Counted from the stretch's first letter, positions 1,576 to 49,792 are shown. The stretch: 64,000 nt of DNA from Rebecca billardiae RCC1528 (GCA_965240325.2 OZ251222.1:1488001-1552000); one strand, 5' to 3'. Made by a program: numbers and translations. Notes: a model not told the origin generated them from the sequence alone.

Positions 1576-3211
1576 GAGCAGCATGCACCACCGTCCGGCC
1601 GTCTCAGGTCGCTGTCGTCGGCAGCCAGCCGGTGCCGGGCACGGTGGCGCCGGGCGCTCGTAGCTGAAGGACCGCGATCAAGGATTGATTGCCAAGTCGT
1701 CAGCCGACGACTGGGAAGTTGAGCCTGATGCTGCCCGCTGCCGGTTCGCGGGACGAATGACGAGCAGCCTATGGCCCGTGAACCTGCGTCAGCTCCTAGA
1801 ACTCTTCCAGACGCGGTGAGGATATCCCTCACGAACTCAGCCCTCTCGCGCTGACGCAGCGCGTCTTGCGGCCTGCTGCGTGCCGCGAGCTATCGGACAG
1901 CGCGGCCCGCCGGCCGCGGGCCTTGGGCGGCGGGTCGACGGCTCCAGGCGGCTGCGGAGGACGCGGAGGCCGGTCGCATCCCGGCCAAGGCGTGGGCATC
2001 GGCCCGGCGGTTGGGCCCGTCAGCACGCCGGCAAGCGCTCTGATGCCACTCGAGACTGGCTGCCGAGCTGTCGCGCAACCGTGCCCGGCAAGACACGTGG
2101 GTCCGCGCCGAGCGTTCACCGGCCTCCGAACCCGCGCACGCCTCCCAGACCAGGGCCAGGGCATGCGCCGTCGATCTACCCAGCCGGAAGCAGCTCGACA
2201 GCCCCGCTGTGTGCGCGCGCGCCTGCCGGTATGTCCGCTGCCCGCTCGAGGGCGAGCACGCGGCGCCTCACCTGCCGACCACGACAGCGCGCCTCGCGTG
2301 CACACTCTGATGGCGAGGCCCGGGATCTGGGCAGGCGATGGCACTACCCGCGCCTCCGCCAAGTCTCGGCCTGGCCGAGCCTGCCACAACGAGCAGCATG
2401 CACCACAGTCCGGCCGTCTCAGGTCACTGTCGTCGGCAGCCAGCATTCGCCGGGCGCGATGGCGCCGGGCGCTCGCGCGCGATCAAGGATTGATTGCCAT
2501 CAAGTCGTCAGCCGTCGACTGGGAAGCTGAGCCTGATGCTGCCCGCTGCCGGGTCGCGGGACGAATAACGAGCAGCCTACGGTCCGTGAACCTGCGTTAG
2601 CTCCTAGAACGCTTTCAGACGTGGTGAGGATCTCCCTCACGACCTCAGCCCTCTCGCGCTGACGCAGCGCGTCCGCTGCCACTCTACGGCCTTGCTTCCT
2701 GCTGCGTGCCGCGAGCTCTCGGACAGCCCGGCCCGCCGGCCGCGGGCCTTGGGCGGCGGGTCGACGGCTCCAGGCGGCTGCGGAGGACGCGGAGGCCGGT
2801 CGCATCCCGGCCAAGGCGTGGGCATCGGCCCGGCGGCTGAGCCCGCCAGCACGCCGGCAAGCGCTCTGATGCCACTCAGCCTCGAGACTGGCTGCAGAGC
2901 TGTCGCGCAACCGTGCCCAGCAAGACACGTGGGTCCGCGCCGAGCGTTCACCGGCCTCCGAACCCGCGCACGCCTCCCAGACCAGGGCCAGGGCATGCGC
3001 CGTCGATCTACCCAGCCGGAAGCAGCTCGACAGCCCCGCTGTGTGCGCGCGCGCCTGCCGGTATGTCCGCTGCCCGCTCGAGGGCGAGCACGCGGCGCCT
3101 CACCTGTCGACCACGACAGCGCGCCTCGCGTGCACACTCTGACGGTGAGGCCCGGGATCTGGGCAGGCGATGGCACTACCCGCGCCTCCGCCAAGTCTCG
3201 GCCTGGCCGAG
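1576..3211. repeat. Tandem duplication, two ~815 bp units (1576-2379 and 2391-3211)
   Basis: Both units start GAGCAGCATGCACCAC and end GTCTCGGCCTGGCCGAG. The 3' two-thirds are nearly identical and the 5' part is more diverged. Confidence 0.9.
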
Positions 3212-3732: not shown

Positions 3733-6700
3733 ATGGAGCCCGGCCAACCGTGCGGCGGGACGGCCTCGTCGGCGAGCCCGATGCGTGCGCCGGCGAACAC
3801 GCCAGCGCGTGGCGTCCGTCGGCCAGCACCAATACCGACCGCATCGCTCATGGAGCGCCTCACCCTGCTGCAGGGAGACGAGCCGGGCAGCGGCCCCAGC
3901 CAATCGCTGCTTCGGCCGTGGCGGTCGAGGCACGAGGCGGTCGGTGGCGCTGCTTCTCCTCGCGCGGCGCGCGCACAGGCGGCGATGAGCAGGGGCTCGG
4001 CATCCACATCCGATGCGCAAACACGGGCGAGTTCTGCTCCGGCGCGGCTGACACACACGCGGACGCGCCGCGTCTCGCGCCGGCTGCTCAGCGACGCCGA
4101 GCGAGCGGAGCGGCGACGGCTGCGGGCCACTCGCAAGGCGGCAGCTTTGCGAGCGGCCGTGGTGGGCGAGAGTGACGCGGCTGCGTCCGCGAATGCGCCG
4201 CACAGGAGACGGCACTCCCTGACCAGCGGCGGGGAGAGGGGCAGCACGAGCTGGCGTGCTGTCACGCAGGCGAGAACGGGCCCGTCTCCGATGGCGTCGC
4301 AAGCCCAGCGCGTGCGTTTCGCGACGCCGCTCTCCACGACGAGCGGCGCCGCCCTGGCCTCGCGGCCGGGCTCACTCGGCGCACCGCTCGCTGGTCCGCC
4401 GGCCAGCGTGACGCCGTCGGCGCCCCCCCCCGCGCACGCTCTGGGTACCAGCTGGGTGCAGCAGCTGCCCCCCGAGCACGAGCCGAGCAGGCACGAGCCA
4501 CCTGGGCCTCACGCCGCCGCCGCCGCCGCCTCCTCCTCCTTCTCGCCGAGGGCTCCCGTGCCTCTCAAGGTGATGCGGCTAGACGTCTCTCTGTCGGACC
4601 TCCACGCGCCTGTCCGCGCGCCCGCCGCCGCCGCCGCGGCCGCCGCCGCCACCGCCGCCGCTGCCGCCGAGAGCGCTGCGCCACCACCCGCGACGCGCAC
4701 GGGCGCGATCATGGCGTTCCTCCGCCGGTGGCAGCGACGGCTTCGCTCCGAGCTGTACGATCTGCGCCAAACGGCGCAGGCAAACGAGGAGCACTTGCAG
4801 CGATATGAGGCCAGCCTGCCCGCTTCGCCCTTGCCCTCGCTCCTGGACATGCCCTCGCTCCTCAGGTCGCGCAGCAGCTCGCGCCTGTCGCAGCAGCTTT
4901 CGCCACGCCCGAGCAGCCTCGTCGCTACTCCCTCGGAGCTGCTGCTGGCGGAGAAGCCCCGCGAGGGCACGCTGGGGCAAGCGATGCGGCACGCGCGGCG
5001 CGCGACGAGGCGCGTGCGCGCAGCGCCGCTGCTCACGTGGCTGTGCCTCCTGCTCGGCTTCCTCGCCATCGCGTTGCTCGTGTACCTGCTCATCCTCGTG
5101 CACGTGCTCAGCGAGTTTGCAAAGCTGCCGTGCACGAACATCGTGCTGGAGGAGGTCGCGCTGCCGGACCTGTGCTCGGCCAATGTGCCCATCGAGGTCA
5201 AGATCCGCATCCAGTCCGGCTCGGCCTACTCAGTGTCCATCACCGACCTGAATGCGATCTTCATGGTGAACGGCACGCAGGAGCTGCTCAAGGTCTCGGT
5301 GCCCGGGAAGCACACGATCAGCTACGGCGACGAGCTCCACCAGCTCACGGCGTACCTCACCATCCCGGACGAGGCGTTCATGGCCAACTTCGCGTACGAC
5401 ATGGTGGCGGGCCGCCCGCCGGCGACCGTGTCGTCGCAGTCCATCGCGATGACCATGCTCCTCTCGACGCGCGCCATCCTGCCGTTCCGCTCGGAGCTCG
5501 CGTACAACGTGAACGCGGACCTGCCGCTCACGGACGAGGCGACTACGCGCATGCGCGAGGAGACGGCGATGGTGCAGCGCGCGGTGGGCTGCAAGGACGC
5601 GTCGGGGATCCACGCGGCCCTGGCGTCGATCCCAACCTACGTGAACAACTCGTTTGGATTCTCGGGCATCAAGGTGCGTCGCGTGCGCACACACTCGCGA
5701 GGAGGGCCCGAGGAGCCCCCGGCGCGCCTCTCTCGCAGCCCAGAGGCAGGCTCCGTCGCGGTTGGCGCGCTGACCCGGTTGCCCGCGACCCCTTCCGCCC
5801 CCAACACGCGCCCGACCTGGACCCATGCGCCCCGCAGCTGGAGGAGGCGACGACGAAGCGCATCCACGCGAGTCTCGGCGTCGCCGTTCGGCTGAACGGG
5901 CCGTTCCGCGTGTCCCTCCCGGCCGTCTCGCTGCAGGTGTGCTCCGGCCGTCTGCTGCCGGTGACCAACGTGACGTCTGGCCTGCGCCTGTTCACGGGCG
6001 AGCACGGCGCGACCGAGGCGCACGATGGCCACGGCCTCGGCGTGATGGGCGCGATCAAGAGCTCGGGGATTGCGGAGGCGTACGTCCCTCCCGCGTGCCT
6101 CGGCACCATCTCGTCGCGGCCGGCGGTCATCGCGCCCGACAGGCGGATCGAGCTTTTCGCCGACGGCGTGATGAACTTCTACGGCTCGAACGAGGACTCC
6201 AAGCGCGAGGCGCTGCACTTCGTCGATCGCGTGACGCGTGGCCATGCCATCAACGTGCACGGCTCCAACGCGAAGGAGCTCCACCACTCGCGCGAGGGCG
6301 ACCTCTCCGAGGCGTACAACGTCGCGTCGGACAACTGCCTGCTGCAGCGGCTCGCGCAGCAGGTGGACGTCGAGGTGCCCTTGTGGGAGCTCATCCCCAC
6401 GCTGGCCCCCGTGGTCGAGGACGCCATGCTCGGCTCAGCGTGCATGGTCGGCCTCGCGCTCCACTGGTGGGAGCCCGACTCGAAGGCGTCGAAGGCGGAC
6501 GACTCTGCGGTGATGTACGACTGCATCACGTTTGTGAAGAAGGGGCTGGACGTGGCGGCGGGCAAGCCGCCGCCTGACGTGGGCAGCCACGCCTGGGCGC
6601 ACGCGGACAACACCTACTACGACTTCGTGCGGCTGGGTGGCGACGACGTGGCCTGCCGGTACCGGCACGAGCACGACTGGGACAAGAAGTACGCGCACAC

Positions 6701-7985
6701 GGTCTTCAAGTACCACGACCCGCACAACTCGGCGCCGCGGCTGCAGTGCGAGGAGGCGTGCGCGTCGCGCGCGGACTGCTTCGCGTTCCAGCTCGATCAC
6801 CACAAGGTCAAGGGCGAGCCGAAGGTCGAATGCCAGCTGTGGGCGTACCCGCCTAACGCCACCACCCCGCGGCCTGGCTCGTCGTGCACCCTGCTCGTCA
6901 AGGCCGACTTCCCGTCGCTCCGCGATCAGATACTCGCGGCGGCACCGGCCGAGTACCGGCACGCCTACTACCGGAAGAAGACGCGCATGATGTCTGCGTC
7001 GAGCTGCAAGGTGGCGTGCGAGACGAACAAGCGTTGCTCCTTCGTGGAGTACGACTCGTCGTCGGCGCGCTGCGCTCTGTGGAAGCGCGTGGACGCCGAC
7101 AACCTCTTCCCGCGGCCGCCACCGCGGCCGCCGCCTCCGAGCCCGCCCAGCGCGCCGCCGAGCCCGCCGTCGCCACCACCCAGCCCCCGGCCGCCGCCGA
7201 GCCCGCCGAGTCCGCCGCCACCGCTTCCGCCGCCGAGTAGCCCGCCGCCCAGGCCACCATCGCCGCCAGCGAGGCCGCCTCCGAGCGCGCCTCCGCCGCC
7301 GGCGTGCGCCTACATGGACCTGACGCGCACTGCCGGTGTGCGCGCCGAGGCGAGCTCGGAGAACGTCCACCACGGCCACACGCAGAAGGCGAGCCTTGCG
7401 CTGGACAGGGATGCGCACACATCCTGGTGCTCGAAAGTGACCCCGAAGCCGTCGATCACGGTCGATCTGGGTGAGCCGCCCGACAACACAGCGCCGCCTG
7501 CGCACTGGCCCCACACCTTGCGTGCACGCGTGCGCGTGGCGAGCATCGGCGCTCATGCCAGCCACTCAAAACCGTGCGTGCCTCCCGCCGCCGCGCCGCC
7601 AACCGGAACACAGGCTCACCCCGGCTCGTCCACAAGATCGACATCGAGTGGGACTGGGAATACGCCCAATCCTTTGTCGTCGAGTCGAGCATGGATGGGG
7701 CCACGTGGCGCGAGCAAGTTCAGGTTCGACGCCGGCGCCGATGCGCCCGCGAGGTCGAGCTCGGAGCGTGCGTGATTGCGACGCACGTTCTGACGTGCGT
7801 CATCTCCGCCACGCGCGCGTGCGCCCTCGCAGGGGACGAATCAGCACGTGCCTCGATCCAAGTACGCCTTGCACCTCCCGTACCACGTGGTGGCGCAGTT
7901 CGTACGCGTGACGAGCCTGAACAGTGGGCGGGGTCACGGCCACGGCTACTGCATTCGGACGTTGGAGGTTTGGGGCTGCCAGTGA
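3733..7985 (+). CDS. Single-pass membrane protein: disordered N-terminus, TM, LEA_2-like beta region, PAN/apple-like Cys domains, Pro-rich stalk, C-terminal F5/8 type C (discoidin) domain. Introns 5674-5837, 7471-7613, 7724-7832
   Basis: TM is LLTWLCLLLGFLAIALLVYLLILVHVL. PAN-like motifs are CEEACASRADCFAF and CKVACETNKRCSFVEY. F5/8C motifs are ASS...ALD...TSWCS...ITVDLG, SMDGATW, AQFVRV and LEVWGC*. GT-AG splicing restores one frame. Confidence 0.8.
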
Positions 7986-8346: not shown

Positions 8347-11300
8347 TCAGCCGGCAGTGCTGACTGGCCGGCTGGTCGCCGCAAGCGCAGCTCGCAGCTC
8401 AGCCACCGCATCGACGACGCCCGCGCACATTGCGAACTTCGCCGAGCACATGTCCGCGATGTCCGCGATGCGGCTGGCCCCGGGCGATCCTGCTGCGCAT
8501 CCGCGGAGCACCTCGGAAACGCCTTCGCACTGCAGCGCTGCCGCTACGGCGAGGAGGCAGTACTTGGCGAGAGCTGCGGGAACGCGATCGCGCAGGAGGC
8601 GCGTGCCGCGCTCGGCCGTTGTGAGCTGAGGACGCTCAAAAGGTCTGCGAACGACCGTCGCAGGACGGGACACGTCATCACTTTGATCGCGGAGCGCGCG
8701 GGCGCGCACGCACCTTTCCCAGTGCCGCCGTTCGCACGATGGATGGCATCAATGCACTCGATGACACCGTCTGCGAGCACTCGCGAAGATGGCGCGGCTG
8801 CGGGTGCTCGCTCGGCATGCCGGAGCAGCTCGCGCAGCTGGAGCAAACGCAGGCGGGGCACGAGGGGGCGGGCGAGATGAGGACATGCCGGCCTCACACC
8901 AGCGCGTGCACGCTGCACACACGTGACGGCTTTCCACGCGTAGCATCGGCGCGGGGCGGATTTCGAGGGCGCACACCGTTGCGACCGCGTAAGGCTCGGC
9001 GCGGACATCGCGGAGCAGCAGGGCGCTCCACCGCTGCTGCTGCACAAGGCCGGACACCAGCTCTGCGCGCGGGGTGGCGGGGCGTCCGCGCCGGCCGGGC
9101 ACGCCGTGTGGGCAGGCGCAGGTGGAGGGCATGTGGCGGTGAGCACACGGGCGCGCGGCGTCGTGACGACGCGGGTGCGTACGGCAGACCGGTCCCGCGC
9201 GAGGCCCCCCCGCGCGCGCACCGCGTGCTGGCGAGCAGATGGACGCGTCGTCGCCAACGGCGTGCACGAGCTCGGCGAAGCACAGGAGGCACATCCACGC
9301 GGCCGACTTGACGCGCTCGTCGTGCGCGCTCTCGAGGAGGCCCTCGCCCAGGACAGCGCACAGATCTGCGTTGCCCAGCAGGGCTCGCACCTCGATGGGC
9401 GGCAGTCCGTCTGCGCCCGCATCGGGATCGGCGCCGCGCGCGCCGCCCGCCGAGGCCAGCTCCTGCAGCGTGATGCATGTCCGGCCGACAGCCTTGAGCG
9501 CGCTCGCACGCAAGCCAGCGTGCACGTGGTCAGCGGGAGCGCCGATGGCGCGGATGAGGTGGACGAGCACCTGCTGCGGCATGTCAGCAGGCGGCTTGGG
9601 GCTGAAGCGCTCGTCGAGCACGGGCGCGATCGTCTCGTACGCCTCGGGCGCACACAGAGAGCCCGCGCTGCCCACGAGCGCGCTCGCGAGCTGATGCCAC
9701 GAGCGCGGCGCAACGCTGGGCGAGCGAGGCGTGAGCGGGTCCGTCAGCGGCACCTCCAGCGAGTCGCTGCGCGCGCCGAGCATCGTGTGCGCGCCGAGCG
9801 GGTGCGGCTCCTCACCGGCTGGCCCGCTGTTCTCCTTGTCATCCTCGCGCTGCCCGACCTCCGGCTCCGGGCTGCCGCCGCCCGGCGCAGTCGGCACGGC
9901 GCCTCCAGCTGCGTCGACCTGCGCGCTGTCCTCCGCAGCGCCACCGCTCATGATGACGGGTGGTGCACGCCGCGGCGACCGTGCTGCAGCGGGTGCCGCA
10001 GACGAGGCCGGGGCCCCGGCCAGGGGGGTCTCGGTCGACGGCGCAGCCGCCCGCTGCAGGCGGGGCTGCGCCGCGTCCTCTGCCGCCGAGCAGACCGCCG
10101 GCGCGTGCGCTGCCACGTGCGCGATGCCGGGGCTGAGCTGGCGCTCCTCGGCAGCCGCCTCGCCAGCAGCGCCGCCGCGCTCGGCCTCATCGACGGCGGC
10201 ATCGGGCGCGGCTGGCATTCGCGCGCTCGGGGTGCGCGGGCCGTCGGTGAGGTCGACCACGCTGCTCGTCTGCGCCGGGCTGGGCGCACCGGTGCGCGCG
10301 GAGACGGCACGCTTCGCCAGCTCGAAGGGGTTGGTGACGGCGCCGGCTGCGCTGGAGGCCGGGTTTGCACGGGGCCGCTTGGCCGAAGGTGGCACTTTCG
10401 GCGGGCGCGCCGCGCCCGGCGTCACCTGCGACGGCGCAGCGCTGTGTTCCGCCGCAGCAGCGCGCGGCCCGGCGGCGTGCGCCACTGCAGCGGCCGCCGG
10501 TGCCGACTCGCTCTCCTCCGTCGGCAGAGCGCTGCCGCACGGGGTCGGCGCCGCCGCGCTCGCCGGCGCTGCAGCAGCAGCGCGTGGCGCGGGTGAATAG
10601 CCGACGTGCGGCGGCTGCTCAGCCGCCGCCGCGACAGGTGCGCTAGCGCCGGCGGCCAGCGCGGCGGCGGGCGGCGCCTCGGGGGCCGCCGGCTGTGCAT
10701 CCTCCGACGCGCTGACTGCCGCCGCGGCTGCTGCTGCAGCCGCCGGGCTGCCGCCCGGCGGCGTGGGTGGGCTGGTGAAGAAGGCCGCCGCACGCGCGAT
10801 GCCACCAGGGCGTGCACCCGCGCTCGTGCTCGCGCTCGGCTTCGGGCCCTTGGGCGCGCGCTTCACGACCAGAGGCCCGGTGATGGGCGCGGGCGCCGAC
10901 GCGTGCTCGGGCTGCGTGCGAGCGGCCAGCCGGGCCATCTCCTGCGCGTGCGCCTCGAGCAGGTGCGGGCGCGCACGCCATGGCTCGCGCCCGCTGCGCT
11001 CCTCGCAGCAGGCGAGGATCTTGCGCTCGGTGCTCAGCTTGGACAGGTGCGGGTGGGCGGCGCGCAGCGCACCCACCAGCGCCGCGAGCCCCGCTGTCGA
11101 CTGGTGCACGAGGAGCAGCAGCTCTGGCGTGTACTCGTCGGTGATCTGCGCCGGCGCGCGGCCCGCCGCAGGCGGTGCGTCGGAAGCGCCCGGCGACGCG
11201 GAGGCCGGGCAAGCCGCCGCCGCTGCCGGCGCGCCGTCGGCGGCGAGTGCCTGCGTGCCGCCGCCATCGCTCGGCGCGGGCGGCGCGGGCGGCGGCACGA

Positions 11301-17119: not shown

Positions 17120-17219
<100 letters not shown>

Positions 17220-36257: not shown

Positions 36258-38228
36258 TGATTAAACTTTTCTGAGGATAGCGCACCAGCAAAATCCCTTG
36301 ACCGCCATCCGGATTTTACGGAGGCCGCGTTTGGACGCAGAAACGCGCGATGGCGAGGCCCGCCCTCGCACCACCGCTCTCGCGAGATCGCGACCGTGCG
36401 ACCTGCGGCGTTGCGCTCGACGCGCTCTTTCTGCTCGGAGGCCGCGAGGACTCCCAGGTGCGCCAGCTCGCGAGCGCGCACCTTCCTCCTCGCCGCGCTC
36501 GCCGAGCACAAGCCGATCTGCAGCAGATGTGCAAGGAGCCGCATGTGGCCTTCCTCGCGCGCGCGGCACGGCTGCACACGAAAATCGTTAGAGGGCACTT
36601 CTCCGCGCATTCTACATTTTGGGGAAAGAACGCCTGAACTGCACAGAAAGTGCCCTCTAACGCTTCCGCTCCTCGCCGTTGCGTGCACGCGCAAAGGAGC
36701 ACTGCAAAGGGTGCGACTGGGAGCATTCCTTCTCCCGGGCGGCCACCACGGCCTCGGAGGTGGTGAGGAACGCGTCGGCGACCACGGCATGGACCACCTC
36801 CGTCGCGCCGGACACTCCGGTCGCCCCTCGCCGGACTCCATCCTCGCTGCGCGCTGACCGTTTGCCGAGCGGGCTGCCCCCGCCGCCTGCCCGGCGTGTG
36901 CCCGCGTGGTGACACAAGATGGTCGAAGGCGTGGCAGCGCGGTGGTGCGTGCGATCGGGGGACCCCACCTGAGCTACGACACGGGCGCGCGCGCTCATCC
37001 GTGCTCATCACGGTGGTGCACGCGCGCGTCGCGCGCTCGTCGGCTGTCGCGCGCTGACGGCTGGGCTGCTTTGGGGTGTCGGCGGCGGCCACAGCTCGCT
37101 GGTACGGGCGCGATGGTGGCTGCGAGTGGTACGCGGCGTTGCACCAGGTCCATGTGCGTCACGCACGACGCTCGGCCGGCTCGCCCTCGGACCATTGGCT
37201 GAGTTCTACTCGCTGCGCGCGCCGCGCGCGGGAGCCGCTCGGCAGCTGCTCGAGGCGCAAAGTGCGCCCCGCGCGCTGAACGTGGGCACGACGAGGTGGT
37301 GCGGCGAGCGTGCGCGGGTGTGTGTGCGTGATGGGCACCCCCATTGCGCTACTTGCCATGCACATCTGCCTCTCGCCAAGCCTTCGACACGATTGCTGCA
37401 AGCGCTGCTCGGAGGCGCGCTCGCGGGCTCGCGCGCGTTTGAATCTGGGCTCGGCGGCGATCGCGTGGACGAGGAGCAGCGCGGTGCACGGTGGCGGAGC
37501 GCGTGCGGAGCGCAGCCTACACCTCCTACACGCTCAATCCAGACACATCGCGCATGCTCGCGCGACCTCCTCGGTCCATCACGTGCGCGTGCGCGCGCGA
37601 GCAGGTGTGCATTCGCCGGGCGCGTTCACGGCGCGCCGCGTTGGCGCGCGCGCACCGATACCCGTGCGCAGCTCGACGAGCGAGCGCGGTGTGTTTCGAT
37701 GCGTATGGGGAGGCTCGAATTTACGCGCGCGCACGCGCCGGCCCTCGCCGCCCCTTCGCTCGCCCACGCCTCATCTGCGCGCTCGGCGTTTGCACGCAGC
37801 TGCTCATCCTTTCCAACACGTGCACAAACGAGCAGATAGCGCTGGGCGAGGTCGATTGGTGCGTCAGATATTCGGCAACGACCAGCCCCGCTCGTGTGCC
37901 GCCGCTCGTGCTACTCTTGACGACCACCTCTGGCTCGGTCGCGCGCACGAGGCTGCTCGCGGGCCCAATCGTGCCGTGTACCGTCAAGCTGTACCGTGCG
38001 CAGCGAGGCGCACTCAGACGTCCGCATGGGCTCGCATGCGAGGGCCCGGCAGTGCGACGCGTCGATGGAGCATGCTCCGGATACGCTTCGGCGCACTTTC
38101 CGACGCGCACGAGCCGCTCGAAGGCGCGGAAGGGCGCCCAAACGGGGCAACCGCCATTTTGCGCCACTTCGGCCCGGATGGCGGTCAAGGGAAATTGCTG
38201 GTGCGCTATCCTCAGAAAAGTTTAATCA
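36258..38228. mobile_element. Non-autonomous DNA transposon (1971 bp) with 55-bp TIRs, inserted in a TA/GATA microsatellite
   Basis: The TIR TGATTAAACTTTTCTGAGGATAGCGCACCAGCAA(AA/TT)TCCCTTGACCGCCATCCGG lies at 36258-36312 and (rc) 38174-38228, with TATA on both sides. No transposase ORF recognised. Confidence 0.9.
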
Positions 38229-38859
<631 letters not shown>

Positions 38860-41109: not shown

Positions 41110-41991
41110 TCATCGTCCGTCGTCCGGAACACCTCTCGCCAGCAGCGAAGCTGCGTGTATCAGCCTCTGCTGCACAGAACATCTGGCCTCTTCGCGCGCC
41201 ATGCCCACTCCGGCAAAGTAGGTGCTGACGGAACGGAGCTCGAGTGTGAATGGGCCACCACGCATGTGCGCGTAGCCGATGTCCTCGTGGGCAGGGTCGG
41301 CCGCGCACAATGAAAGACCGATCGATTCGACCCGACGAGGGTCCATCGATATGGCCTGCGGCTGCACAAAGCCACGCCACGTCATGACAAAGGCTGCCCA
41401 GGGCAGAGTGACCTCTCGCCATGGCCCAAGAGCGCCCATCTCCGCCTCGCTGCGCGTGCCGGGCGGCAAGGGTGGTGGTGGCAGGAGCGCCTGGTATATT
41501 TCTTGTGTATCTTGCATCAACCGAGACGTCTTGACCGTGACAACGTACGGCCGGTGGTCCGACCGGAGCACGAACGCCAGGCCGTCGAACTCGTCGAGCG
41601 GCCCAAACGGAGCGGGTTCGCGTGAGCGCACCGAGCAGTACCCACTCCGAATCATCCTCGCCCCGGCAAACGACGAGGGAGTCGCTCGAGCGGGCTCTGG
41701 TGACTCACTGTCGAACTCGGTACTCAGGCTGCCCGCGAGCACGCCCACACCAGCACCCTCCCGCTCGGCGTGGTGCCAGTCGGCCCAAGACTGCCCTCCG
41801 TCTTGCTGGTCGGTCAGAATGATCCAGTCCTTGACGGACTCGGGAGCGTCGAACGAGAAGAGCTCTAGGCGTGAGGGAGGAGGACGTAGCGGCTCATGGT
41901 TGAAGAATGCGTCCCACGCCTGTGACCAGGAGCCACGCCTGCCGACCGCCCAAGCCGCCTGTCCGCCTCGCCATCGTGTTGCGCGCAGCAT
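41110..41991 (-). CDS. NDUFAF1: Complex I assembly factor CIA30/NDUFAF1 family, with a mitochondrial-type presequence
   Basis: LFSFD...WIILTDQQDGGQS, IRSGYCSVRS, LRSDHRPY, WREVTLPWAAFVMTWRGFV and GPFTLELRSV. The N-terminus MLRATRWRGG is Arg-rich. Confidence 0.9.
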   Translation of the reverse strand: MLRATRWRGGQAAWAVGRRGSWSQAWDAFFNHEPLRPPPSRLELFSFDAPESVKDWIILTDQQDGGQSWADWHHAEREGAGVGVLAGSLSTEFDSESPEPARATPSSFAGARMIRSGYCSVRSREPAPFGPLDEFDGLAFVLRSDHRPYVVTVKTSRLMQDTQEIYQALLPPPPLPPGTRSEAEMGALGPWREVTLPWAAFVMTWRGFVQPQAISMDPRRVESIGLSLCAADPAHEDIGYAHMRGGPFTLELRSVSTYFAGVGMAREEARCSVQQRLIHAASLLARGVPDDGR

Positions 41992-42134
41992 CTTGACTGT
42001 CGCTTGACGAAATGGGAGGTCACACAGTCTGGAATCGTCATCGTCACATTTCAAGACACTGGCTGCCCGAACGCCAAGAACGCCCACATTTGAGGCTCCT
42101 GAGTCCTGACCACCTCCCACCCCTCAAAAACACC

Positions 42135-45100
42135 ATGGGCCGAGACGACGATGATGAGCTCCTCGACAAGCAGGCGCCTCAGAGCGAGGACGGGGGGTGG
42201 TCAACGGCGCTCCCCGCCGAGTTGCAGAAGGTGATGATACGCTCGCAGAAGCGCGAGCTCACCGAGCGTCACCGCCGGCTGAGGGCGTACGCCAGCCGCT
42301 CCAAAGGCTCTGACGCCCGGCGCGACGTTCCCGGCCTGAGCACCCAGATGGACGATACGCCGGGCGTTGGCGTTGTCGACCTCGTCCTCGTCGTGCCACG
42401 CGGAAAGGCGCCCGATGGCGACGAGGAGCAGGGCGAGGAGCAGGGCGAGTCCATCATGGCCTGGGCCAGCCGGCGGCTGAGTGGGGGCAAGCGCGAGCGC
42501 GTGCAGCACCTGCAAGCTGCGACGAGCGCGCTCGTGCGCGCCGGGCTGGAGATCCAGGTGTCTCACAGCTCGGACGGCAACTGGACCTTCTTCATGCTGT
42601 CGGCCTCCGATGCGCGCCTTGCGCGGGAGGCCGAGCGATCGCACTTCGACAAGCGCCTGCGGCCTGAGTACCGCGTGTTTGACGTGGGCTTCCGCGAGTT
42701 CTCTGTGCACTTCAAGGGCCTCTTTGCGCGCGGGCTGGACGGGTACTTCTCCGCGCTTGAGCGGCAGCAGCTCATCCTGAGGATCATCGAGGCCGACCGA
42801 CGCCGCGGGGGCGCCGGGCTCGACCTCGACCGCCTCGTGGTCGAGGGCGTGATCACCGACTACATCTCGCTGCCCGCGGGCGCGTACGTGAAGCGGCTGC
42901 GCACCTCGTGGATCAGGACGTTCGGCTCGCCGCCGATCGACGACATCCGCGACTACCTGGGCGAGCGCGTCGCGTTCTACTTCGCGTGGGTGACCACGTA
43001 CACGGCGTGGCTCGGCGGGCTCGCGCTCGTGAGCCTGGCCGTGCAGATCTACGCGTGGGTGACGTCCATCGACAACGTGCTGCTGCCCGTGTACTGCGTC
43101 GTGGTGTGCGTGTGGTGCACGCTCTTCCTCGAGTGGTGGAAGCGGCGCAACGTCGAGCTGGCATACCGGTGGGACTCCGAGGACCTCGACGCGCACCAGC
43201 CTCTGCGCCCCGAGTTCATCGCCAAGGAGGGGCTCGAGCGTCGGCGCGGCCTGTACACGCCAGAAGGCTTTGTCGACGCGCCTGACCTGGTGCCCGAGGA
43301 GCGCGCCGTCCCCTACTACCCGGAGGGGCGGCGGAAGGTGATCAGCACGGTCAACCTGGTGGGCACGCTCGTCCTCATGTGCGGTGTGTCGGCGACCGTG
43401 ATCGGCATCTTCGCTTTCAAGGTCTTCCTCGCCGCATCCGCGGAGCAGACGTGGTGGGGCGCCAACGCCGTCAATGTCGCGGCGTTCCTGAACACCGTCT
43501 TCATCACGATCATGAACTATGTGTGGGCATGGGTGTCGATCAAGCTGAACGACATGGAGGTGCATCACTCCGACGATGCCTACGAGAACGCGCTGATCGT
43601 CAAGACGTTCGCCTTCCAGTTCATCAACTCGTACATCGCTCTCTTCTACCTCGCGTTCATCGCTGGCGCCGAGCTCAACCTGTTTGGCCTGCGCGAGGAG
43701 GGCACGGGCGAGCCACTGCACGACTCGTGCCCGCCCGCCGGCGACGACGGGCAGCCGGACTGCATGCTTGCGATGTACTCGCAGATGCAGATGATCATCC
43801 TGGTCAAGCAGGGCTCGCGCCACGTGCAGGCGCTCCTCCCGCTCCTCTACCGCTGGTACATGGCTCGGCGCGCGAACATGGCGATCGAGGTGGAGGACCG
43901 CACGCTCACGCAGCGCATCGAGCACGAGCTGTCGCTGCCCGAGTACGCGGGCACGTTCGTCGAGTACAACGAGATGATCCTGCAGTTCGGGTACATGACG
44001 ATGTTCGCGGTGGCGTACCCGCTCGGGGCTGTGATCTGCTTCCTGAACAACGTGCTCGAGCGCCAGACGGACGCGATCAAGGTGCTGCTCTTCTGCCGCC
44101 GCCCGCGCGCGATGCGCGCCAACTCGATTGGCGTCTGGGAGTCGATCCTGCACTTCATCTCGATCCTCGCGGTCTTCACGAACTGCCTCGTCATGTACCT
44201 CTCGTCGGACGCGCTGAAGTTCTATGGGGCCCACTCGACTGCGCTCGTGATCGTCGTCTTGGCAGTGGAGCACGTGCTTTTCGCGCTCAAGTACGGCCTG
44301 GCCACCCTGATCCCCGACACGCCGTTCTGGGTGACGGCTGCAAAGGCGCGGATGCAGCGGAGGCTGCGGGAGATTGAGCTCAACAAGAAGGCGCAGGAGC
44401 TCACGCCGTCGGAGGCTGTGGCCGCGGCGGCTGCTGACGGCGATGACCATCGTAAGTATAACTTCCTGAACCCCTTTGGCCGGTTCGCGACCGCCGGCCA
44501 GGCCGCTCCTGAGACGGAGGAGGAAGAGGTGAGGCTCCTGGAGCCGTTTGCGCCCACTGCGCGCACATCGGCAGGGCTGGCTCCGCGACCGCGCTGGCCT
44601 CCCGCGCATTACACTCGCCGCCTCGTGCGTCTGACGTTCTGCCTACCTTGCTCGTGCTCGCGTGCTCGCGAACTGCGTCGGTGCAGGACGAGCCAGATGT
44701 CGTCCTCGTCTTCAAGGCCGTCGAGGACGACACCGAGGAGGAGAAGGCAAAGAAGATCCAAGAGCAGCGCTTGCAGCTCAAGGACGACCTGACCCGCGCA
44801 GGTGCGTGCGTGCGATTGGGGCCTGGGAGCAGGTGCCACGCATTCCAGCGTGCGAGTGCGACTCACGGCACGCCCCTGCGCGTGTGACGGCACGCCCCTG
44901 CGTGTGTGCCGCACGCCTCGTCGCGCGCGCAGGCCTCAACGTGAGCGTCAGCTGGGGCTCGAAGGGCGAGCGGCTGTACTACCTCCTCACCGGCACCGAC
45001 GGCCGCTTTGACGAGGCAGCCGAGGACATGCACATGAGTAAGAGGCTGCAGTACGAGGAGGACACGGGCTCGCGGATCGGATACAAGGTGTTCCACCGGA

Positions 45101-46821
45101 AGGACAAGCACCTCTTCGCCTCGGCGCAGGACGAGTTCTTCACGGAGCTCGAGCGCCAGATGCTCACCTTCCACGTCGTCGAAGGCGACGCACGCGAGAA
45201 CGGCGCCGGGCTCGACCTCGACCGCCTCGTGGTCGAGGGCGTGATCACTGACTACATCTCGCTGCCCGCGGGCGCGTACGTGAAGCGGCTGCGCACCTCG
45301 TGGATCAGGACGTTCGGCTCGCCGCCGATCGACGACATCCGCGACTACCTGGGCGAGCGCGTCGCGTTCTACTTCGCGTGGGTGACCACGTACACGGCGT
45401 GGCTCGGCGGGCTCGCGCTCGTGAGCCTGGCCGTGCAGATCTACGCGTGGGTGACGTCCATCGACAACGTGCTGCTGCCCGTGTACTGCGTCGTGGTGTG
45501 CGTGTGGTGCACGCTCTTCCTCGAGTGGTGGAAGCGGCGCAACGCCGAGCTGGCGTACATTTGGGACAGCGAGCACGTGTCTGACTTTGAGCCTCTGCGC
45601 CCCGAGTTCATCGCCAAGGAGGGGCTCGAGCGTCGGCGCGGCCTGTACACGGCCCAGGGCTTTGTGGAAATCGACGACGACCCCGGCGTGCAGCAGGTCC
45701 CCTACTTCTCGGAGGATCTGCGGAGGGCCATCATGGCATGCAACTCGATGTTCACCTTGATGCTCGGCTTCTTCGTGGTCACGAGCGTGATCGGCATCTT
45801 TGCTTTCAAGGTCTTCCTCGCCGCATCCGCGGAGCAGACGTGGTGGAGCGCCAACGCCGTCAATGTCGCGGCGTTCCTGAACACCGTCTTCATCACGATC
45901 ATGAACTATGTGTGGGCATGGGTGTCGATCAAGCTGAACGACATGGAGGTGCATCGCTCGGACGATGACTACGAGAACGCGCTGATCGTCAAGACGTTCG
46001 CCTTCCAGTTCATCAACTCGTACATCGCTCTCTTCTACCTCGCGTTCATCGCTGGCGCCGAGCTCAACCTGTTTGGCCTGCGCGAGGAGGGCACGGGCGA
46101 GCCACTGCACGACTCGTGCCCGCCCGCCGGCGACGACGGGCAGCCGGACTGCATGCTTGCGATGTACTCGCAGATGCAGATGATCATCCTGGTCAAGCAG
46201 GGCTCGCGCCACGTGCAGGCGCTCCTCCCGCTCCTCTACCGCTGGTACATGGCTCGGCGCGCGAACATGGCGATCGAGGTGGAGGACCGCACGCTCACGC
46301 AGCGCATCGAGCACGAGCTGTCACTGCCCGAGTACGCGGGCACGTTCGTCGAGTACAACGAGATGATCCTGCAGTTCGGGTACATGACGATGTTCGCGGT
46401 GGCGTACCCGTTCGGGGCTGTGATCTGCTTCCTGAACAACGTGCTCGAGCGCCAGACGGACGCGATCAAGGTGCTGCTCCTCTGCCGCCGCCCGCGCGCG
46501 ATGCGCGCCAACTCGATTGGCGTCTGGGAGTCGATCCTGCACTTCATCTCGATCCTCGCGGTCTTCACGAACTGCCTCGTCATGTACCTCTCGTCGAAAT
46601 CCTTGCGACGCGATTTCCGTCTGAATGCCACCGGCGTTGTGATGGTGAGTCTCGCGGTCGAGCACGCGCTCTTCCTCTTCAAGTTTGGCCTGAGCCAGCT
46701 TATCCCCGACACGCCATTCTGGGTGACGAAGGAGCGCGCGCGCACGGCTTGGCGTGTGAACGAGTTGGAGCTCGTGGCCGCATCAGCACAGCCCACGGCA
46801 TCGGCTCCAGCAGAGGCCTGA
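42135..46821 (+). CDS. Tandem double anoctamin/TMEM16 (two full Anoctamin units, ~1465 aa). Introns 44529-44686, 44802-44932
   Basis: Each half has PIDDIRDYLGERVAFYFAW, FLEWWKRRN, YENALIVKTFAFQFINSYIALFYLAF, EYNEMILQFGY, NNVLERQTDAIK, IGVWESIL, VEH and IPDTP. The GT-AG introns join the halves with no stop. Confidence 0.92.
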
Positions 46822-47119
46822 CGCAGGCCTGCCACGACCATAGCCAAGGTGAGGTCGTCGGACCGGTTACGGTCGCAACTTCGACCGGTGATCCTGCTGG
46901 ATTCCTGGTCGGTCATTACTCATTCACGTCATTGGTACTGCCGTAGTCTTAGAAGTGAGTAAGTAAATTATATATATATTATATATATATTATAATATAT
47001 TATAATATAGTTACTAAGTTGCGCGCGTGTCAGTGTCGTTAAATCATAGAATGAGTCAGTGCCTTCCGCTTATATATTGATGCGATGATGCTTATAATAC
47101 GACTACTGCTAATGCCAGG

Positions 47120-49792
47120 CTAGCCGCAGTCGTCGTCGTCATCATCATCGAAGAGCCTCTCCAGCACATCGAAGACCGAGCCGCGAATGTCAGTCGTCGC
47201 CGTGCACTTTTTGTCCTCACCGCTCCTGCCCCACGCCGCTCTTGGCACTGCGCCGGGACGATCGGCTATGGCGTTCGCGTCCAAATCTGCGCTGCTGCCG
47301 AGAGGCTCTGCGATGGCTTCATCACGATTCGCCACGCCCGTATGAGCGCCTGCCGGCGGCGCCGCATCCGCACCCGTTGCGCGCTTCGGCGCCGTGTCGA
47401 GCGTGGCGCAAACGCCCTGCGAGGGTGCGCGCGTGGAGGGCGGTGCTGGCACAGCCTCCGCGGGGCCGAGTGGCACCGCCCGCAGCGGGCTCCGGGGGTG
47501 GTCAGCGCTTGTCACAGGGCGCTCAGCATGCGCTCCTCGAGACTCGGGCACCGTCGGGTGTGGATGCCGGCTCAGCGGAGCTCGCTCGAGCGTGGAGCCA
47601 GTGCCGGTGCGACTTGCTCGAGCGCGCTTCGCATCGCGCTGCTGCTGCTCGTGCCGGTGCACAGCGACGGTCGCAAAGCGCAGCAGGAAGTCTCCGGTGA
47701 GAGCGGCCGGAACCTCCGGCTCACTGCCGGCGGCTGCGCCCTGGCGCGCGGCCCGCTTGCTCGCCTGCTGCGTCAGCGCTGCGGCACTGGTGACGAGCGT
47801 GCCCACGTCAGATGCACCGCTGGCGCGGACTCGCGCGGCTTGGCCGCCGCGCGGTGAGAGCCGATCGCCTGCCCGGCCGCTCGAGGCCGGCGCCCTCCCA
47901 GCCGCCGCGCGCGCGGTCTTCGTGGGCCCGCCCCCCCCGTCGCTGGGATCGGCGTCCAGGTCGATCACCTCGGCTGGTGCAGCCGCTCGCTTCCGCTTGC
48001 TGCCGGGCTGCCGCTTGGGGGCTGCGGCCGTCGCGTTTGATGCGGCGGTCTCGCCGCCTGTGCCTCTCGCAGCACTCGCCTGCCACGGCGTCTTGCGTGC
48101 GCGCACGGCCGGGGCGCCGGGCCGTGTGCCAGGGCCGAGGGGCGCTTCCTCGGGCGCCGAGGCCACGCGAGAGGGCGCGGCTAGCACGGCTCGTGCGGCT
48201 GGCGCGGTGGGCCCGCTGGCTGTGCAGGACGCGGCCTCCGGTGCCCCCGCCGCCGCCGCGCTCGAATCCTGCTGACGAAGCAGCAGCCCTGCGCCCGCAG
48301 CCGTGAACGAGCGCGGCGACCGCGCCCTCGCCAGGAGCAGCATGCAGACGTGCTTGCACGAAACGCCCGCCTTCTTCGCGCCCCCCGCCCACGGGCAAGA
48401 GCATTGCGAGCAAAGGACCGAGCCGCGGTCTGCCGCCAGTTGCGCCTGCGTCGAGTAGAGCTCCTCGCCGCCGCCCTTGTACCTGAAGCCGTACACGTCC
48501 CCGTCCGCTGCGTGGTCCGACATGCGCGCTGGGTTGAACTCGTCCTTCGCCTTTGCGAGGAGCTTGGCGCCGTCTGCGCCGCTCGCCCGGACGAGTTGAC
48601 AGACGAGCTCCTCGGACAGCGCGCCGCATGGACTCACGACGCCGTGCTCGCGCCCGTGCAAGGTCGCGCACTCGATGCGGCTGTCGGCCGGCTCGGCGAG
48701 TGCGCGACCTGTGCGCATGCGCGCGCGCGGGATCCAGGCCGGCCGAGCCCCGGCGCTCCCTGTGGCTGAGCCATCGGCAGCGGCGCGCAAAAACGCCTCC
48801 GTGCTCAGGCGCGCGAAGCCACCCGCCCACGCCTCGGCCGGCGCCTCGTCGCAACCCACGCACAAGGCCCGCTCGGGTGGCACGCCGTGCCTGCGCGCCA
48901 GGTACGCGCCCAGGTGCGCTGTGGCTGCGAGGCCTGCCCACTCGCCGCAGTCCCATTGGCGCGCGTAGTGGAGGCTCGCCGAGCCCGAGAGGGCAGCCGC
49001 CATCTGCGGGAGCCAGGCTGGCAGCGGCGCGTCCGCGGATCGCTCGCCGATCATGACCGCCACGCGAGCGGAAGCGCGCCCTCGCGCCCAGCTGGCCACC
49101 GCCTGCACGAGCAGCTGCAGCTTGCCAGCATGCGCGAGCCTCTGGACGGCATGCGCATCGATGAAGAGACCGTCGCGGCCCTCGGCCTCGCCATCGAGGA
49201 GCGCTGGGTCCAGGCCCTCGCGCACCTGCACGGGCATGCATGCGTATGCCCCACGCTGCGCATCGCCGTCGAGACCCGCGGCCTCGCCTTGCTGCGGGGC
49301 GCGATCCAAGGACTGCGCGCCGCACGAGGCCGCCAGCAGCGCGGGCGTGAGCAGCTCTGGCAGGGATTTCGCACTCAGCCCGATGTCCTTGATGCCCGAC
49401 GACATCGCGGCCGCCAGCCGGCACTCGTAGGCCCAACGAATCTGCTCCTCCCCGCCCATGGGAAGGAAGTGCATGCAGCGCACCTGCGCGTCAGGCACCG
49501 CGCGCAGAATGCAGTGGATCGTCTCCACGCGCGTCTCGGGTTCGAGGTGATTGTCGTCAAAGTAGAGCTCGCCGTCGTGCGATGCGAGCCAGCGCGCGCC
49601 CTGCTGGCGCGCCGCACGCGTTCGGAACGTGAAGTCGAGCCGGTCGCCTGGGTCGCGGAACCAGCGACGATAGCATTGCCTCATGGCCCGGTTGGCGCCA
49701 GCGCTCTCGACTTTGCGCACGATCGCCGCCGTCTTCCCAGACGATGGCGGCCCGCAGACGATAATGACGCGCTTGTTAGGCGCATCGCTCAT
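47120..49792 (-). CDS. P-loop kinase (PNK/AAA_33-like), degenerate HAD-like region, SWIM zinc finger and disordered tail
   Basis: VIIVCGPPSSGKT and LYFDDNHLEPETR; LARRHGVPPERALCVGCD...AWAGGF; CSCP-x9-SCKHVCMLLL (CxCxnCxH). Confidence 0.7.
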   Translation of the reverse strand: MSDAPNKRVIIVCGPPSSGKTAAIVRKVESAGANRAMRQCYRRWFRDPGDRLDFTFRTRAARQQGARWLASHDGELYFDDNHLEPETRVETIHCILRAVPDAQVRCMHFLPMGGEEQIRWAYECRLAAAMSSGIKDIGLSAKSLPELLTPALLAASCGAQSLDRAPQQGEAAGLDGDAQRGAYACMPVQVREGLDPALLDGEAEGRDGLFIDAHAVQRLAHAGKLQLLVQAVASWARGRASARVAVMIGERSADAPLPAWLPQMAAALSGSASLHYARQWDCGEWAGLAATAHLGAYLARRHGVPPERALCVGCDEAPAEAWAGGFARLSTEAFLRAAADGSATGSAGARPAWIPRARMRTGRALAEPADSRIECATLHGREHGVVSPCGALSEELVCQLVRASGADGAKLLAKAKDEFNPARMSDHAADGDVYGFRYKGGGEELYSTQAQLAADRGSVLCSQCSCPWAGGAKKAGVSCKHVCMLLLARARSPRSFTAAGAGLLLRQQDSSAAAAGAPEAASCTASGPTAPAARAVLAAPSRVASAPEEAPLGPGTRPGAPAVRARKTPWQASAARGTGGETAASNATAAAPKRQPGSKRKRAAAPAEVIDLDADPSDGGGGPTKTARAAAGRAPASSGRAGDRLSPRGGQAARVRASGASDVGTLVTSAAALTQQASKRAARQGAAAGSEPEVPAALTGDFLLRFATVAVHRHEQQQRDAKRARASRTGTGSTLERAPLSRHPHPTVPESRGAHAERPVTSADHPRSPLRAVPLGPAEAVPAPPSTRAPSQGVCATLDTAPKRATGADAAPPAGAHTGVANRDEAIAEPLGSSADLDANAIADRPGAVPRAAWGRSGEDKKCTATTDIRGSVFDVLERLFDDDDDDDCG

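Follow-up and report, generated by a model that had tools for sequence, protein, structure and literature searches.

A putative single gene for two complete TMEM16 units in the alga Rebecca billardiae

Introduction

A TMEM16 (anoctamin) subunit has ten membrane helices, with both ends of the chain in the cytosol. TMEM16 channels and scramblases have been studied as symmetric homodimers, and cross-talk between the subunits has been approached only with man-made concatemers. Here we describe a locus in a 64,000-nucleotide stretch of DNA from Rebecca billardiae RCC1528 (GCA_965240325.2, OZ251222.1:1488001-1552000), called the window below, in which positions 42135-46821 of the plus strand are probably one gene of three exons. 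As read from the DNA sequence, the gene would encode about 1,465 residues containing two complete, non-identical TMEM16 units.

The closest described systems are engineered tandem dimers of the mammalian chloride channel TMEM16A, in which a flexible linker runs from the C-terminus of one subunit to the N-terminus of the next (Lim et al. 2016, PMC5089934; Jeng et al. 2016, PMC5089935; Fallah et al. 2011, PMC3033684). Concatemers joined by a 31-residue Gly/Ser linker formed intramolecular dimers with wild-type-like gating and conduction and with two independent pores (PMC5089934; also PMC5089935). In TMEM16K the dimer interface is composed of transmembrane helix (TM) 10 and a domain-swapped cytosolic extension; the extension contacts the TM3-5 unit of the partner by the beta9-beta10 hairpin, plus the beta4-beta5 hairpin of the N-terminal cytoplasmic domain (PMC6718402). 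A survey of the superfamily from the Saier laboratory mentions no more than larger "fusion" proteins that carry hydrophilic domains, and it detected no internal repeats. No published description of a natural two-unit TMEM16 protein was found in the literature.

Results

A preliminary description of the locus had proposed two full anoctamin units, and both units were found to match profile positions 1-459 of 460 of the Pfam Anoctamin family (PF04547). The match covers residues 271-739 of unit 1 with an expectation value (E) of 2e-114 and residues 135-603 of exon 3 in unit 2 with E 1.7e-112. The AlphaFold2 model of unit 1, built with a 68-sequence alignment, had a mean predicted local distance difference test (pLDDT) score of 84.5 and a predicted template modelling score (pTM) of 0.83. 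When the model was compared with the PDB using Foldseek, the best 50 matches were all to TMEM16K, TMEM16F, TMEM16A, nhTMEM16 or afTMEM16, with E down to 7e-28 and template modelling scores by target up to 0.80. In the model, residues 1-76 are a disordered extension ahead of the N-terminal cytosolic domain. Ten membrane helices follow, then C-terminal helices that reach to about residue 767, and the chain ends in a disordered tail. Strand 1 spans residues 83-88 (pLDDT 93), helix 1 residues 107-135 and strand 2 residues 139-144. The two units are 78% identical as protein over 629 residues. Unit 2 is expected to have the TMEM16 fold on the basis of that identity and of the matches of its sequence to the solved structures of TMEM16K, TMEM16F, TMEM16A, nhTMEM16 and afTMEM16 (E down to 7e-49).

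The acidic Ca2+ ligands of TM7 (E..E) and TM8 (E...D) are present in both units. Alignment with phmmer placed E473 and E476 of unit 2, together with the E and D of NNVLERQTD, on E667/E670 and E699/D703 of mouse TMEM16F, the Ca2+ ligands in TMEM16F numbering. The unit 1 equivalents are identical (E610, E613, E642 and D646).

The coding signal across the junction of the two units was evaluated from the fraction of G+C (GC) at the first, second and third codon positions. The values were 0.64/0.42/0.92 for unit 1 (exon 1) and 0.59/0.39/0.92 for unit 2 (exon 3). The tail of unit 1 is coding-like up to 44528 (0.71/0.46/0.79), and coding-like periodicity persists within its last segment, 44452-44528 (0.64/0.46/0.77). 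The values are flat over 44529-44686 (0.68/0.72/0.69), strongly periodic in exon 2 (0.74/0.21/0.87), in one frame only that differs from the frame of unit 1, and flat again in intron 2 (0.73/0.77/0.70). The 158 nucleotides (nt) between the halves, 44529-44686, are non-coding. The frame of unit 1 reaches the donor GAG/GTGAGG (the slash marks the splice site) without a stop codon. If unspliced, the frame would continue for 88 further codons, across exon 2 in the wrong frame, to a stop at 44790-44792. Since codon periodicity is flat over 44529-44686, this junk-like read-through is not a real tail of unit 1.

Exon 2 supplies the DVVLVF strand and the helix ending ...TRAG. They are strand 1 and helix 1 of the N-terminal domain and match residues 83-137 of unit 1 as well as the homologues P0001, P0002 and P0003; the exon must therefore be translated. 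The preliminary description had remarked that DEPDVVLVFK echoes the first half of the gene; the echo (DVVLVFK vs DLVLVV) is real, and its counterpart in unit 1 is strand 1 at residues 83-88. Followed upstream, the frame of exon 2 closes at a TGA at 44510, no in-frame ATG lies between that stop codon and the end of the exon, and no ATG is present in any frame over 44529-44696. The first ATG after that stretch, at 44697, begins an out-of-frame reading that comes to an end after 31 codons. The next in-frame ATGs are at 45028 and 45034, and starting at either would delete strands 1-3 and helix 1. Thus, exon 2 cannot start translation.

A local script was used to join the tail of unit 1 to exon 2 and to check frames and stops. 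Although 73 GT-AG or GC-AG combinations keep the frame open, a consensus-like GT donor is found only in the combination GAG/GTGAGG (44529) to GTGCAG/GAC (44686). The donor 8-mer AGGTGAGG has six copies in the window vs 1.5 expected, a fourfold enrichment that amounts to about one copy per 21 kb of strand. The chance that a copy falls in phase and on the right strand within the 190 nt past the conserved C-terminus is estimated at below 1%. Intron 1 resembles intron 2, which is proven by homology, in length (158 vs 131 nt), in GC content, in the G/GTG donor, in the CAG/G acceptor and in a TGAC motif: a branch-like CTGAC lies about 52 nt ahead of the acceptor of intron 1 and a TGAC about 45 nt ahead of that of intron 2. 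Removal of intron 2 (donor CAG/GTGCGT, acceptor GCGCAG/GC) yields TRAG/LNVSVSWG, colinear with VRAGLEIQVSHS of unit 1 (uninterrupted VRAGLEIQV) and with RRAGLRTRV of P0001. Intron 1 is likewise predicted to be spliced. The introns and the 115-bp exon given in the preliminary description agree exactly with the coordinates obtained here; both introns are GT..AG and the frame is kept.

One further donor, the seemingly perfect GTAAGT at 44452, was rejected because it is out of phase with the exon 2 acceptor, pairs only with purine-rich pseudo-acceptors and is followed by 77 nt that are still coding-like. A search within the window found no introner-like repeat family matching intron 1 or intron 2, and the linker contained no remnants of a duplicated promoter, 5' end or 3' flank (z 1.1 and -0.85).

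The 8-mer AGGTGAGG is also present at 46847-46854 on the plus strand, 26 nt past the stop codon of unit 2, and thus both units are followed by it. The downstream copy could be the donor of an intron in the 3' untranslated region (UTR), or it could remain from an ancestral terminal intron that assisted the fusion; past the 8-mer itself the two sites show no similarity in their flanks. Unit 1 and P0001 are uninterrupted at the position of intron 2, a pattern that points to a gain in unit 2, or to parallel losses, after the duplication. Intron 2 holds an internal direct repeat (ACGGCACGCCCCTGCG...).

Codon periodicity, the quality of the splice sites, the lack of a start in unit 2 and of a stop in unit 1, and the length of the linker described below argue for one gene. 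The same evidence bears on two separate tandem paralogous genes, which we consider unlikely. Here the promoter of unit 2 would lie within about 44530-44690 and translation would start at Met 45028 or 45034, or at a non-AUG codon, while unit 1 would end at the stop at 44790-44792 or nearby; unit 2 would then have a truncated N-terminal domain or be on its way to becoming a pseudogene. Gene models commonly merge tandem paralogues in error, as in the Thraustotheca model described below and the beetle model P0007. Nevertheless, two genes at this locus would have unit 1 overlapping exon 2 in another frame, with an 88-codon tail devoid of coding signal, and would leave exon 2 and the first 31 codons of exon 3 untranslated despite their strong periodicity and family-typical sequence. 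The out-of-frame ATG at 44697 would also precede the real start.

The layout of the locus is given in Table 1. The exons of 2394, 115 and 1889 nt sum to 1,466 codons including the stop, or 1,465 without it, with the frame kept throughout. The real 3' end of the locus is marked by the AT-rich spacer downstream of unit 2, ahead of a convergent gene that ends at 47120. Between the units GC is 0.68-0.73, with no AT-rich dip, unlike the region downstream of unit 2, and the absence of such a spacer is a further point against two genes. Upstream, 41990-42134 has a GC of 0.55 and a third-position GC of only 0.53 and is not coding-like; for that reason the ATG at 42012 was ruled out as the start. Long pure microsatellites are found elsewhere in the window, (ATAG)131 followed by (AT)n at 38228-38856 and (TA)48 at 17121-17216, and appear as extreme AT-rich dips in DNA that is otherwise 68% GC.

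Table 1. Positions of the predicted TMEM16 gene and adjoining elements, counted from the first nucleotide of the window.
Feature	Position	Strand	Basis or remark
Probable promoter and 5' UTR of the TMEM16 gene	41990..42134	.	common to the divergent CIA30-like minus-strand gene
Exon 1 (unit 1), 798 codons	42135..44528	+	ATG at 42135 in good context (caccATGG); Pfam Anoctamin (PF04547) match
Span of the three unit 1 gene-conversion tracts	42810..44214	+	sliding identity of the DNA alignment
Inter-unit linker, first part (unit 1 residues about 768-798)	44436..44528	+	low pLDDT; acidic end ...ETEEEE
Proposed intron 1, 158 nt, unit-unit join	44529..44686	+	GTGAGG...GTGCAG, predicted
Exon 2, 115 nt (38 codons + 1 nt), DEPDVVLVFK ... 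DDLTRAG	44687..44801	+	strand 1 and helix 1 of the unit 2 N-terminal domain
Intron 2, 131 nt	44802..44932	+	GTGCGT...GCGCAG; supported by homology
Exon 3, rest of unit 2, 628 codons from 44935; stop TGA 46819-46821	44933..46821	+	Pfam Anoctamin (PF04547) match
AT-rich microsatellite-bearing spacer, (TA)n, past the unit 2 stop	46866..47176	.	GC down to 0.22

Alignment of the DNA of the two units revealed three tracts of 99-100% identity, at about 42810-43152, 43198-43259 and 43395-44214 in unit 1, corresponding to 45202-45544, 45590-45651 and 45784-46603 in unit 2, with an offset of 2392/2389 nt. Outside the tracts are segments of 70-77% DNA identity, and the tracts themselves are interrupted by the diverged TM2-TM3 loop and TM3 segment. 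In the tracts the number of synonymous substitutions per synonymous site (dS) is 0.011-0.012. Outside them it rises to 0.41 for the TM2-TM4 segment, to 0.74 for the N-terminal domain and to 1.14 for TM10 together with the C-terminal helix. Such tiny values in the tracts, against 0.41-1.14 in the diverged segments, indicate an old duplication in which ongoing gene conversion keeps the core alike. TM1-2 and TM4-9, which hold the lipid/ion pathway and the Ca2+ site, are kept nearly identical by conversion; it has passed over the N-terminal domain, TM3 and the TM2-TM3 hairpin, and TM10 and the C-terminal helix. Outgroups tested for likeness to unit 1 at the N-terminus and to unit 2 at the C-terminus gave mixed counts that were too small.

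Identical tracts of this kind raise the question of an assembly artefact, in which two alleles or dispersed paralogues were stitched together. Short-read assemblers can misjoin tracts of up to about 820 nt at > 99% identity, as found here. However, the junction 44215-45200 is unique in the window and leads straight from the TM10 specific to unit 1 into the exon 2 and N-terminal domain specific to unit 2; misjoining within one of the identical tracts would exchange halves and would not produce this junction. Alleles, moreover, would not be 70-77% identical in blocks, and an artefact is highly improbable.

Every indel between the units is in frame, the unit 2-specific segments have a third-position GC of 0.77-0.93, and unit 2 retains the residues that are invariant across P0001 and P0002. 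Thus, unit 2 is not a decaying pseudogene; the in-frame indels and kept codon bias count against the decay that two separate genes might entail.

The nearest full-length relative of the units is P0001, a protein of 829 residues encoded on a JGI metagenome contig (L001) and 47-49% identical to them. In the window a homologue of the complex I assembly factor CIA30 (tblastn, 54%) lies divergently upstream of the TMEM16 gene at 41194-41892 on the minus strand. The same arrangement of CIA30 on the minus strand and anoctamin on the plus strand is present in L001, with CIA30 at 2196-3062 (-). Because this neighbour is conserved, P0001 is the positional (syntenic) orthologue of the algal gene.

Several observations weigh against a single gene with two functional units. 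For unit 1 against unit 2, the ratio of nonsynonymous to synonymous substitution rates (dN/dS) comes to 0.8 over the TM2-TM4 segment and to about 1 over the N-terminal domain, which could reflect relaxed constraint on one copy; strong codon bias depresses dS and so inflates dN/dS. The nearest relatives are single units: P0002, a complete MMETSP transcript of 777 residues, is 41-44% identical and has one unit only, and P0001 is called as one unit on a contig that ends 77 nt past the called stop, so that a second unit there is possible. P0009, a 343-residue fragment with 77% identity, is uninformative on the junction, and the junction is shown in none of the close relatives P0001, P0002 and P0009. 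A word search with unit 1 among proteins of 509-1,620 residues found neither a self-match nor a two-unit close relative. The spacer between CIA30 and anoctamin is 45 nt in L001 and about 145 nt in the window; with promoter regions in the lineage that can be shorter than 150 nt, the 158-nt stretch between the halves could in principle hold a promoter. The relatives, the short promoter regions and the dN/dS of about 1 in the unit 2 N-terminal domain are also what speaks for two genes. In TM6, the positions of the Asn and Glu Ca2+ ligands, N650/E654 of TMEM16A and N620/E624 of TMEM16F, fall on R and A (with Q565 adjacent) in both units, in a helix where the alignment is weak. P0001 and P0002 are also without the TM6 Glu, and the consensus of the 68-sequence family has an E four residues before the conserved Pro. 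The mismatch (unit 1 residues about 559-569) may be a subfamily peculiarity with an altered Ca2+ site, or a misalignment, and Ca2+ control may differ from that of TMEM16A and TMEM16F. Finally, a phase-0 donor, AAG/GTGATG at 42231, is in phase with exon 2.

The last observation opens the way to one transcription unit with alternative splicing, yielding single-unit proteins alongside or instead of the fusion. Joining the 42231 donor to the acceptor at 44686 would give Met1-Lys32 plus unit 2 alone, and retention of intron 1, which reaches the stop at 44790, would give unit 1 alone, allowing homo- and heterodimers from one locus. Use of this donor would nevertheless require a 2.46-kb intron containing a whole coding unit, far longer than the introns of 131 and 158 nt; the donor is also weaker than GAG/GTGAGG, and the phase match is a 1-in-3 chance. 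Single-unit products made in this way are quite improbable.

Junction-spanning fragments were also sought by a word search with the first 250 residues of unit 2, which returned one distant match only, and a search for RNA sequencing runs made with 44200-45250 listed none. Among 80 metagenomic loci, all of 32% identity or less, no tandem pair was found, many of the contigs being too short to tell. On the 1.2-kb contig encoding P0009 (L082) the anoctamin homology stops abruptly at FWV, and 820-1203 resembles the reverse strand of a thioredoxin-like gene. This is possibly a chimeric contig, or an intron with an antisense gene. If real, the algal fusion would be lineage-specific.

Natural proteins with two anoctamin units were retrieved by an exhaustive protein search ranked by summed domain score, which led to multi-unit models from Saprolegniales. 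The two-unit models are SPRG_03350 of Saprolegnia parasitica (1,896 residues) and SDRG_13914 of S. diclina (P0155; 1,914 residues). At the S. parasitica locus (KK583196.1; L083:3001-8723) an uninterrupted open reading frame (ORF) of 1,388 codons, L083:4557-8723, takes in the last part of unit A, the whole of unit B and, between them, a linker of about 460 residues. Since this junction lies inside one uninterrupted ORF it needs no assumption of splicing, and natural single-chain two-unit TMEM16 proteins very probably exist. The preliminary description had taken TMEM16 subunits to be encoded singly as a rule, which these proteins show to be not quite right, and their existence makes the algal architecture plausible and not unique. 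A third model, 'anoctamin, partial' of Thraustotheca clavata (JNBS01001127.1; L084:3-10829), has 2,374 residues and three to four units in separate ORFs (21-1340, 5804-7975 and 8355-10829); gene prediction has probably run the members of a tandem array together.

Divergence between the two Saprolegnia units is deep, with scores of 33+39 vs 160 bits against the same query. A common origin of the algal and oomycete fusions is not borne out, the algal units being each other's closest relatives (78%) with single units as the nearest outsiders. The mutual closeness of the algal units and the deep divergence of the Saprolegnia units indicate that the two fusions are independent.

Discussion

In the unit 1 model the last confident helix ends near residue 767. 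Residues 768-798 have a pLDDT of 44-51, with no regular structure after 778, and together with the DEP ahead of strand 1 of unit 2 they would form an acidic, disordered linker about 34 residues long. Because a linker of this length joins two ends that are both cytosolic, and because engineered concatemers work, an intramolecular head-to-tail dimer appears sterically reasonable. The preliminary description had proposed a covalent pseudo-heterodimer. One frame through two units stands as the best reading of the DNA; the splicing and the intramolecular dimerisation we infer only.

The following mechanism is proposed for the single gene. An old tandem duplication would have given rise to the pair of units, and an intron would now join unit 1, which has no stop, to unit 2, which has no start. 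Gene conversion would continue, holding TM1-2 and TM4-9 nearly identical. The C-terminal helix of a unit would pack on its partner, and the units would in this way fold back into an intramolecular dimer of fixed 1:1 composition. This dimer would have two lipid/ion pathways, each with its own Ca2+ site, and would act like an ordinary TMEM16 dimer; the product would be expected to scramble lipids or conduct ions.

The protein may further be an obligate pseudo-heterodimer with an asymmetry that selection maintains, the halves having co-evolved a directional interface that works only head to tail in one chain; we offer this tentatively and regard it as doubtful. The three segments not reached by conversion correspond, in TMEM16K, to the elements that build or contact the dimer interface and the dimer cavity (PMC6718402). 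This pattern fits selection for an asymmetric interface, yet the segments are only three and the agreement may be coincidence. The halves may also have split roles, for example one regulatory and one active.

If the gene is as predicted, evolution has used the concatemer trick apparently at least twice, in this alga and independently in Saprolegnia. The protein would allow either half to be mutated on its own with no prior engineering. As an experiment of nature, it would also show which parts are bound to remain similar (the pathway and the Ca2+ site) and which are free to diverge (the interface). The locus would offer a clean example of an old tandem duplicate becoming one gene while conversion continues inside it. 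If the splice is unused, the locus is just a pair of tandem paralogues of little interest.

Three kinds of known system can be set beside the algal gene. P0001 and P0002 resemble the algal units in the pattern of the N-terminal domain and in an apparent lack of the acidic ligand of TM6; they differ in having one unit per protein as called. SPRG_03350 and SDRG_13914 of Saprolegnia share with the algal gene two anoctamin units in one predicted polypeptide. Their host is an oomycete, the units are about 460 residues apart, and distinct paralogues were fused there long ago, with gene conversion leaving no trace. Natural TMEM16 concatemers thus have a precedent in Saprolegnia that is apparently undescribed, from which the algal one would differ by its closely related units and its spliced join. 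The engineered TMEM16A tandem dimers are likewise joined C-terminus to N-terminus, by 31 Gly/Ser residues vs about 34 disordered residues in the alga. They are laboratory constructs with identical or point-mutated halves, whereas the algal join would be natural and made by predicted splicing, between halves with 22% of their residues different, the differences clustering in the regions that in TMEM16K make up or contact the dimer interface.

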